Both the position numbers and the translations under genes were made by a program. 64,000 nucleotides of DNA. Origin: Zootoca vivipara (Eukaryota). This document shows positions 50,101 to 53,100 of this stretch, piece by piece (positions within the stretch are counted from its first letter, which is position 1; the number at the start of each line of letters is the position of its first letter). The notes below the pieces were generated by a model. That model saw only the letters and a program-made list of their open reading frames with translations. It searched no databases and was not told the origin of the DNA. Location: positions 82,088,001 through 82,152,000 of the forward strand of contig NC_083283.1 in the NCBI RefSeq assembly GCF_963506605.1. The letters run 5' to 3'.

Positions 50101-53100
50101 ACAAAATAAAAAAATTCCTTCCAGTAGCACCTAGTTGTTGTTTAGTCGTTTCCGACTCTTCGTGACCCCATGGACCAGAGCATGCCAGGCATTCCTGTCT
50201 TCCACTGCCTCCCACAGTATGGTTAGACTCATGTTCATAACTTCGAGAACACTGTCCAACCATCTCGTCCTCTGTCGTCCCCTTCTCCTTGTGCCCTCAA
50301 ACTTTCCCAACACCAGGGTCTTTTCCAGGGAGTCTTCTCTTCTCATGAGGTGGCCAAAGTATTGGAGCCTCAGCTTCACGACCTGTCCTTCCAGTGAGCA
50401 CTCAGGGCTGATTTCCTTAAGAATGGATAGGTTTGATCTTCTTGCAGTCCATGGGACTCTCAAGAGTCTCCTCCAGCACCATAATTCAAAAGCATCAATT
50501 ATTTGGCGACCAGCCTTCTTTATGGTCCAGCTCTCACTTCCATACATCACTACTGGGAAAACCATAGCTTTAACTATGCGGACCTTTGTTGGCAAGGTGA
50601 TGTCTCTGCTTTTTAAGATGCTGTCTAGGTTTGTCACTGCTTTTCACCCAAGAAGCAGGCATCTTTTAATTTCGTGACTGCTGTCACCATCTGCAGTGAT
50701 CAAGGAGACCAAGAAAGTAAAATCTCTCACTGCCTCCATTTCTTCCCCTTTTATATGCCAGGAGGTGATGGGACCAGTGGCCATGATCTTGGTTTTTTTG
50801 ATCTTGAGCTTCAGACCATATTTTGCGCTCTCCTCTTTCACCCTCATTAAAAGGTTCTTCAATTCCTCCTCATTTTCTGCCATCAAGGTTGTGTCATCAG
50901 CATATCTGAGGTTGTTGATATTTCTTCCGGCAATCTTAATTCCGGCTTGGGATTCATCCAGTACAGCCTCTCTCATGATGAATTCTGCATATAAGTTAAA
51001 TAAGCAGGGAGACAATATACAGCCTTGTTGTACTCCTTTCCCAATTTTGAACCAACCACTTATTCCGTATCCAGTTCTAACCGTAGCACCTTAGAGACCA
51101 ACTAAGTTTGTCATCGATATGAGCTTTCGTGTGCATGCACACTTCTTCAGATAATTCCCTCTTCTTATATCTCCTATCTATTTTTCTAAGTCTTACTACA
51201 AATTCTTCTTTCCCCTTCTCACATCATCTTCAACCATTAGTTGACCCCTCCATTGCAGGGGGCTGGACTACATGATCCTTGGGGTCCCTTCCATCTCTAC
51301 AATTCTATGATTCTTCTTCTTTCTTAGGTGACTGGTGCTGATGATACTAAGCTAAATGAACCAATGATTCTTATTTTATGTAAGGCAGCTTTCTATAGTC
51401 CTTTGTAGGGAGACACGGGTGGCACTGTGGACTAAACCACTGAGGCTCTTGGGTTTGCTGATCAGAAGGTTGGCGGTTCCAATACACGCAACAGGGTGAG
51501 ATCCCATTGCTCTGTCCCAGCTCCTGCCAATCTAACAGTTCGAAAGCACACCAGTGCAAGTAGATAAATAGGTACCGCTGTGGCGGGAGGGTAAATGGCA
51601 TTTCCATGCACTCTGGTAGTTGTTGGAAAGCTGTCTGTGGACAAACATTGGTTCCCTCGGCCTGAAGCAAGATGAGCGCCACACCCCAGTCACTTTTGAC
51701 TGGAATTAAACCGTCCTGGGGTCCTTTACTTTTTACCTATATTGCTTTGTACTTTATAACAAGCTTGCTCAACTTGTGACCCCTCCAATATGAATGGGGA
51801 CCACCAGGCATGCGTGAGTAGGGGTTGGGGGTGGAGGTTGTAACTTCTGCAGGTGTTCAATATCTCTCCCCCTTTTGTGATGCCCCAGGCAGACAGGAAG
51901 AACATGGATTATGAAGCCACTGTTTCCCCCTAAGTTGCAGCAGGAATGGAAGAAGCCTGATTTGTCGGTGAACTTGATCCATGAGGGTTCTGATGACTTA
52001 CTTGAATAGATGCTTCCCCTGAACAATCCTGAGTTACTTTGAGTTAGATCCAACTAACCCAGTGCATTAGTGGAAGAACTCCTGCTGGTACAATGGGGCT
52101 TTCTCTCTCTCTTCTCCCACAAACACTCTGGAGGGTCAGGAGAGCCCCCAGAACAGCACTTGAGAGAAGGAGAGGGGAGATTGTTCCATCTGGCAAACAA
52201 AAATGGTCATGCTGATGGAACAACTGTGTTAGCGTGACATTGAATTCTATCTCAATGTTTTCTGAAGCACTCCTAACGGGTCTCTCCAGCAACAAGAAGG
52301 GGAGTTTTTTTAAAAAAAATATTGTGCTGCAAGACCTTCATATTTAACAGCATAAATGATTCATAAAACTTTTCAGTAGATTTAACATTTTTATAACTTG
52401 CCTGACTGACGAGATCTTCCAGGAAATTCTCCTTCTCATCTTCATCAGGTACATGTACGTTGGGAGTTACATATTCTACTATAAATACTTTTGTTACAAT
52501 GGTACTCTGTCTGCCGTCTCTGTAAGTTAAGAAACAATAAACTCTAGACCAGGCCTGCATAATTTGTGTCTCATATAAGGGATTCTCTTCTTTTTGCTGC
52601 CTCTGGTAAATGTATAAGAATTTGGCTTTGCGGGTCACATGCTGTCTGTGTTCTAACACAGTAGGAAAATAATAGGTAAATAAGGATTAAATGTGTTTCA
52701 ACTTTATTACTTAATTTTTTAAAATATATATATATCTTGCCTTTGAGTCCTCAAATAGACTCCTCAATGCAGTTAATAATAATCAAAGTTAAATTAAACC
52801 AAAACCAATCCATAAAATAAACAATAACACAAAATAACATCCAACCAATATGGAACAGAAACAACAGTAGAAATTTCCACATGGAGATATACATCCTCGC
52901 ATTGATGGAGGTTGGACTAGACCAGGCATCTCCAACCTTCAGCCCTCCAGATGTTTTGGACTACAATTCCCATCATCCCTGACCATTGGACCTGTTAGCT
53001 AGGGATCATGGGAGTTGTAGGCCAAAACATCTGGAGGGCCACAGGTTAGGGATGCCTGGATTAGACGATTCTCAGGGTCCCTTCCAGCTCTACAATTCTA

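Follow-up and report, generated by a model that had tools for sequence, protein, structure and literature searches.

Does the short repeat that occurs three times in a 64,000-bp stretch of the genome of the lizard Zootoca vivipara (NC_083283.1, positions 82,088,001 to 82,152,000; hereafter the window) carry a genuine hammerhead ribozyme, what kind of element does it come from, and could the one copy with a complete catalytic core, which lies in sense orientation within an intron of DZANK1, cut the transcript of its host gene? A reading made from the sequence alone had proposed that it could. The motif is real and was correctly recognised as a minimal type I hammerhead of the kind found in Penelope-like elements (PLEs); this kind has already been described. 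The three loci are probably dead insertions derived from the junction between the pseudo-long terminal repeat (pseudo-LTR) and the open reading frame (ORF) of a lizard Penelope-like retrotransposon, and a function in DZANK1 is unsupported.

Direct reading on the element strand, two probes and blastn all place the three copies where the sequence-only reading had reported them. They belong to one element of about 115–165 bp. The first (c1; 23028..23143, minus strand) is an uninterrupted unit of 116 bp, and the second (c2; 36149..36241, plus strand) is 93 bp long. The third (c3, minus strand) is split into a hammerhead at 51118..51153, a linker with a conserved block AACTTAGTTGGTCTCTAAGGTGCTAC that is identical in all three copies (51083..51117), the 3' fragment of a long interspersed nuclear element (LINE) at 50133..51082, and a 3' half made up of a T-rich stretch and an AC-rich end CAGACCAACACAGCTACC (50042..50132; blastn and alignment). 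In the unit, TAT-CTGAAGA-A-GTGTGCATGCACAC-GAAA-GC-T(C/T)-ATA(C/T) is followed by a short variable linker and the invariant block AACTTAGTTGGTCTCTAAGGTGCTACTGG, after which come a T-rich stretch and then an AC-rich end (CAGACCAAC...). A 29-nt hammerhead probe allowing up to three mismatches finds exactly three sites in the window—51122-51150 on the minus strand with none, and 23112-23140 (minus) and 36152-36180 (plus) with one each—where shuffled sequences lead to an expectation of zero; a 26-nt probe from outside the hammerhead finds the same three loci with no mismatches in any of them. Pairwise identity among the copies is 92–95% by blastn, which recovers the 3' half of c3 at 50081-50132 and no additional copies in the window, whose sequence contains no N. 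Target-site duplication is clear for c1 (17/18 bp, 23144-23160 and 23010-23027; score reached by 0/1000 shuffles) and not significant for c2 or c3 (score reached by 441/1000 and 311/1000 shuffles), and the 3' limit of c3 is uncertain for this reason.

The motif of c3 reads UAU-CUGAAGA-A-GUGUG(CAUG)CACAC-GAAA-GC-UC↓AUA (the arrow marks the predicted cut), and it is the only complete minimal type I hammerhead among the three copies. On the minus strand, the 5' strand of helix I (UAU) occupies 51153-51151, the CUGAAGA box 51150-51144, an extra A after A9 position 51143, helix II (GUGUG-CAUG-CACAC) 51142-51129, the GAAA box 51128-51125, G15.2-C16.2 51124-51123, U16.1 and C17 51122-51121, and the 3' strand of helix I (AUA) 51120-51118, with cleavage predicted between 51121 and 51120. 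The 14 nt of helix II form a perfect palindrome (GUGUGCAUGCACAC) that includes the G10.1-C11.1 pair (G at 51142 with C at 51129); there is no helix III and no loop 3, and the palindrome A-GC-U lies at 51125-51122. The description of this copy as intact stands for the catalytic core, which is complete, but not for helix I: the family form is GUAU/AUAC (4 bp, as in c2), and c3 retains only the three A-U pairs of UAU/AUA, since its position 1.4 is U where the family has C. The core mutations that had been named in the other two copies are correct, with G5A in c1 (23138) and G10.1C in c2 (36160), where the G10.1-C11.1 pair is lost; c1 also has U17 (23111). A descriptor of the minimal hammerhead (CUGANGA, 0–1 nt, helix II with 4 bp or more, GAAA, complementarity of 15.2 and 16.2, UH, and helix I with 3 bp or more) has a single match in the window, which is the c3 motif at 51153-51118 on the minus strand, and none in 200 dinucleotide-preserving shuffles. 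The motif is thus far beyond chance.

When minimal hammerheads were described in PLEs, several features emerged that had not been part of the search pattern, among them a conserved G10.1-C11.1 pair, a palindromic 15.2-16.2, and a helix II that is long where helix I is short (PMC4209133). Helix III forms only between two copies, and most of the motifs are single and dispersed within their genomes, those of reptiles included (PMC4209133). The element described here shares with these the type I order, the CUGANGA and GAAA boxes and UH, the extra nucleotide between A9 and 10.1, the G10.1-C11.1 pair, a helix II that is longer than canonical (5–6 bp here), the absence of loop 3 together with a palindromic A-GC-U and a helix III that needs a second copy, and the occurrence as mostly single dispersed copies in vertebrates that include reptiles. 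Its helix I is short as well, with 4 bp in the family form and 3 bp in c3, where the published range is 4–5 bp. The element differs in that its helix II is a perfect 14-nt palindrome, and in that no PLE ORF was seen beside the copies in the window. Four strings from the lizard family have no match in the supplements of the paper on the Anolis element (PMC11167929), and a full-text search with the 14-nt helix II string returned no match; the exact family sequence was not found in the searchable literature.

The abundance and conservation of the family were examined in three raw RNA runs and one DNA contig set from the same species, placed on positions 22600-23900, that is, at the c1 locus, to which all of the read results below refer. 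DNA word depth sums to about 4.0 million on 23084-23127 and stands at about 55 on the single-copy flanks; word depth is not a copy number, and these values suggest roughly 10^4–10^5 copy equivalents, which bears out the earlier claim of a high-copy dispersed family. In the family consensus both G5 and C17 are restored: about 99% of reads have T>C at 23138, and A>G at 23111 accounts for 72% of DNA depth and about 87–96% of RNA reads. Among the variants listed, beyond which there are 36 weaker ones, just one other core change reaches 5% in the DNA run, namely G12A, which falls at a CpG (23118; 15% of DNA depth), and a variant at 23129 is seen in one run. The 30-nt block downstream is equally clean, with only 23084 varying (13%), and variation rises to about 50% of depth in the linker (23100-23105) and in the T-rich part (23049-23070), which indicates subfamilies. 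Two modules, the hammerhead and the downstream leader, are held constant by master copies. The boxes vary less than the linker and the T-rich flank do, yet no less than the leader block, and the expectation that they would be conserved above their flanks is borne out only in part. In metagenome contigs, the 26-nt block from outside the hammerhead has no exact match (0 loci).

Loose read ends cluster at 23143, where agreement with the consensus is about 0.45; this suggests, roughly, that four fifths of the copies start at 23143 and about a fifth continue upstream with shared sequence (...GGTTACTTCTGTTTCAG-TG-TAT). The upstream consensus of these longer members, taken from reads upstream of 23143, is ...TATAAGAATCTGGTTACTTCTGTTTCAG-TG-TATCTGAAGA, with GGTTACTTCTGTTTCAGTG adjoining the TAT start; it ends in a polypyrimidine tract plus CAG and resembles a 3' splice site whose end falls at helix I. 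The arrangement recalls that of the Drosophila virilis Penelope element, in which an intron ends at helix I (PMC4209133). Family reads and contigs also contain joints between opposite strands and joints that go back 36 or 39 positions (23104>23069 and 23131>23093), neither of which is present at the three loci; these inverted and tandem joints would be consistent with PLE-style insertions. Family RNA is derived from both strands, with hammerhead-sense reads making up 24%, 26% and 61% in the three runs.

The Anolis element Poseidon_Ac provides a comparison for the layout as well as for the motif. Across its tandem junction it reads CUGAGGA-U-(6-bp helix II)-GAAA-CG-UC↓AGGAG, with ACGU replacing AGCU (compared by eye); the architecture is the same and the helix letters differ, which is the pattern expected of a conserved RNA structure. 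In Poseidon_Ac the hammerhead is at the pseudo-LTR/ORF junction and an AC-rich region follows about 100–120 nt downstream, and in the family described here the hammerhead is likewise followed by an AC-rich end, about 85–105 nt beyond it. Reverse transcription of Poseidon_Ac starts internally, at an AC-rich stem-loop 111–118 nt past the start of the ORF, which is itself within the hammerhead; an optional 'tail' of 30–40 nt is explained by a second such site, and the RNA needed for insertion reaches about +172 (PMC11167929). Comparison of the three copies shows that they too have a variable 3' end with an optional tail, a trait of PLE insertions: c2, the form without a tail, ends within the T-rich stretch, c1 about 40 nt further at CAGACCAACCTTCC, and c3 past CAGACCAAC. 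Both families are from lizards, and in neither are RNA-sequencing ends seen at the cut site. No similarity between them is detectable by eye outside the core boxes, and the position of the ATG also differs, spanning A9, the extra nucleotide and 10.1 in Poseidon_Ac and lying in loop II here (51134-51136 on the minus strand, with equivalents in c1 and c2). From the loop II ATG runs a short frame, MHTKAH...SWSLRCYW; given the variable T-run further downstream, this frame is unlikely to be coding.

We propose that each copy represents a PLE minimal hammerhead together with a leader of about 100 nt that would extend up to the start sites of the PLE reverse transcriptase. In the parent element the hammerhead would sit where tandem units meet, and its helix III would form only by pairing of the AGCU palindrome with that of a second copy, to be used, if at all, in processing of PLE RNA. 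Short copies would arise when reverse transcription begins at an internal start site or sites, which would explain why the 3' end is short in c2 and longer in c1 and c3, and copying would then run back to the 5' end of the RNA at the base of helix I; a start or processing site at that position is our guess as to the cause of the shared 5' end. By analogy with Poseidon_Ac, the segment of c3 at 51083..51117 would be a template-recognition leader downstream of the hammerhead, and the short copies would be dead on arrival, and so presumably immobile, because they lack a required portion of the RNA, the one that the enzyme needs beyond its start site. The copy c3 in the DZANK1 intron would be one such relic. 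Parentage from a PLE is inferred from motif and layout.

Several observations weigh against this proposal. No ORF for a PLE reverse transcriptase with a GIY-YIG endonuclease was seen next to any copy in the window, and the only reverse transcriptase among the ORFs examined, a subset of those in the window, is that of the LINE fragment. No hammerhead model of Rfam matches, whether the window is searched at the gathering score or 51040-51200 at E≤10, which is expected where helix III is absent, yet leaves the motif with no curated model to support it. By a rough estimate, about four fifths of the members start at the same base, 23143, unlike the outcome of random 5' truncation, and a discrete element, possibly mobilised in trans, would account for this shared start equally well. 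Standard RNA sequencing is also compatible with low-level cleavage.

How far do these points favour other explanations? The lack of an Rfam match could mean that a palindrome-rich repeat just happens to hold CUGANGA and GAAA, and the 30-nt downstream block, being as conserved as the hammerhead, shows that conservation is not specific to the ribozyme. Such a coincidence is nonetheless almost negligibly probable given the empty shuffles, the agreement with published PLE hammerheads in four features outside the core definition, the same architecture kept by the Anolis element with different helix letters, and a family consensus that repairs the private core mutations of c1. A canonical hammerhead is ruled out by the same lack of a model match; canonical type I examples, among them those of Schistosoma, newt satellite 2 and the amniote intronic HH9 and HH10, share with our motif the catalytic core and strand order of Rfam Hammerhead_1, but in those a true helix III is present, helices I and II touch through their loops, and cleavage takes place in monomers or in tandem. 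The high copy number and the shared 5' start bear instead on whether the unit of about 120 bp is a true non-autonomous retroposon, a PLE-dependent 'mini-retrozyme' or a parasite resembling a short interspersed nuclear element (SINE), which is transcribed from its own or a flanking promoter and copied in trans by PLE reverse transcriptase. In keeping with this, c1 is a clean unit whose target-site duplication abuts the 23143 start, the subfamilies differ in their linker and T-rich parts and keep both conserved blocks, and a 2026 preprint makes the case for a derivation of animal non-LTR retrozymes from PLE pseudo-LTRs (bioRxiv 10.64898/2026.07.22.740005). Those retrozymes are similarly short non-coding units, related to PLE pseudo-LTRs, whose type I hammerhead is dependent on dimers in vertebrates, and with dispersed monomeric 'offspring' copies, some of them intronic (PMC7229834; bioRxiv 10.64898/2026.07.22.740005). 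They are, however, defined by tandem arrays and by RNAs of 170–400 nt in both linear and circular form, whereas the copies described here are solitary, one has a target-site duplication, and reads at the c1 locus contain no back-joined circular junction at the cut site 23111/23110. A retrozyme in the defined sense is ruled out by the lack of that junction and of any tandem array in the window by blastn. For a retroposon in the wider sense, the RNA that Poseidon_Ac needs for insertion, reaching about +172, extends past the reverse transcription start at +111–118, so that our copies would lack part of the recognition signal; moreover, molecule starts do not pile up at the 5' end of the element, reads run into unrelated flanks, the three copies are not in tandem, and the joints that go back lie at 23104>23069 and 23131>23093 and not at the cut site. 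We regard an independent retroposon as unlikely. Of the sequence-only description of a non-autonomous ribozyme-bearing family, the high copy number stands; non-autonomy is possible, and by-products of a parent element are at least as likely.

A further alternative is that c3 acts as a ribozyme on DZANK1 pre-mRNA, either alone or through AGCU pairing in trans, and so lowers or regulates the transcript. It has a complete catalytic core on the strand that is transcribed, the abundant family RNA, which comes from both strands, means that partner RNAs are present in the cell, and dimeric constructs of minimal hammerheads show some cleavage in vitro, although weakly, where monomers show none (PMC4209133). 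Its helix I, however, consists of three A-U pairs and its helix III is absent; the hammerhead fold is predicted at -4.1 kcal/mol and the best monomer fold at -7.0, a difference of 2.9. The AGCU/AGCU duplex is predicted to contribute only about -2.5 kcal/mol, and two copies would favour a 14-bp intermolecular duplex of helix II. Neither the probe nor a relaxed core scan finds a second complete motif on the same strand in the window; candidate partners from the relaxed scan at 62603 (plus), 59477 (minus) and 32256 (minus) were rejected as chance look-alikes without the arrangement of UH and palindrome. Antisense c2 could furthermore sequester c3 in the pre-mRNA, where a near-perfect duplex of about 70 bp is predicted (-119.8 kcal/mol). 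At the level of the family, the three RNA runs contain no pile-up of ends at 23111/23110, the predicted cut of c1, where depth is about 1,600–2,900 and ends remain below a fifth of local depth, although ordinary RNA sequencing can miss rare cleavage; nor is there a pile-up of molecule starts at the 5' end of the element, or of starts or ends anywhere else on it, and the reads that continue into the flanks indicate read-through transcription. Poseidon_Ac behaves similarly, in that no RNA sequencing reads begin or end at its cut site and hammerhead mutants insert normally in vitro (PMC11167929). Finally, a LINE has inserted into c3 38 nt downstream with no apparent consequence, and the site therefore behaves as neutral DNA. 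The claim that c3 could cut the pre-mRNA or pair in trans thus finds no backing: nothing indicates cutting of the DZANK1 transcript, and we consider such an activity highly improbable. Likewise, no meaning attaches to which of the copies are mutated, a pattern of ordinary decay among dead copies. In the parent element the hammerhead may be at best a weak, dimer-dependent ribozyme.

A broader form of the idea is that sense intronic copies are conditional ribozymes, to which family RNA supplies a partner through AGCU or through the 14-nt palindrome of helix II, so that a trans-dimer would cut host pre-mRNAs; in a milder version, the 120-bp unit would be a discrete PLE parasite, mobilised in trans, with a 5' end determined by a start site or splice site at helix I. 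We regard this as very unlikely. If the conditional ribozymes were real, PLE relics numbering in the tens of thousands would amount to a diffuse layer of control acting after transcription. On the reading we prefer, that of dead PLE-derived insertions, the result is one of repeat annotation, namely a lizard genome with on the order of 10^4–10^5 copies of a putative PLE piece running from hammerhead to reverse transcription start. The constancy of hammerhead and leader in the master copies agrees with the view, put forward in the literature, that the two work for the retrotransposon's own cycle, and the relics would matter to the host only if they cleaved host transcripts, of which we found no sign.

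The assignment of the host genes is based on the domains encoded by ORFs. On the minus strand these include Fn3_assoc (54465-54668), DZR (48117-48299) and ankyrin repeats (35862-36080), and a POLR3F-like exon (Rpc34) lies in divergent orientation at 60169-60399 on the plus strand. The domain set and neighbourhood fit DZANK1 on the minus strand, a name that we take from the human locus. The orientations given in the sequence-only reading are confirmed: c3, with the complete core, is sense in a DZANK1 intron, c2 is antisense in another intron of that gene, at about 70 nt from the ankyrin exon (35862-36080, minus strand), and c1 is antisense in a KAT14 intron about 65 nt before an ORF (23208-23810, plus strand) that holds a large KAT14 exon. 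RNA reads on this exon are almost all first mate on the minus strand in runs X20 and X21, and these two libraries are therefore stranded. A distance of 15 kb separates c2 (36149-36241, plus) from c3 (51083-51153, minus), and the two point in opposite directions within a single transcription unit, that of DZANK1; this inverted pair is a possible ADAR substrate, or an inverted repeat that might promote back-splicing.

The LINE within c3 is a 5'-truncated fragment of 950 bp with an RVT_1 domain (E=1.3e-12), whose junctions were read directly. It is flanked by a 9-bp target-site duplication, AGGTGCTAC, at 51083-51091 and 50124-50132, and it arrived after c3; its 3' end looks BovB/RTE-like. Other repeats were also noted. 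The tRNA-Lys(CTT)-like head of a tRNA-derived SINE is at 11485-11560 on the plus strand (Rfam tRNA, 45.8 bits; ARAGORN), overlapped by an inverted second copy at 11372-11562 on the minus strand. The 3' part of this SINE is found five more times on the plus strand, at 10590-10661, 51247-51312, 53059-53100, 59229-59298 and 62894-62964, one of them about 100 nt upstream of c3. A further repeat, also of very high copy number, has its end within 22600-22690, with a DNA word depth of about 525,000 at 22600-22643, strong RNA coverage and subfamily variants.

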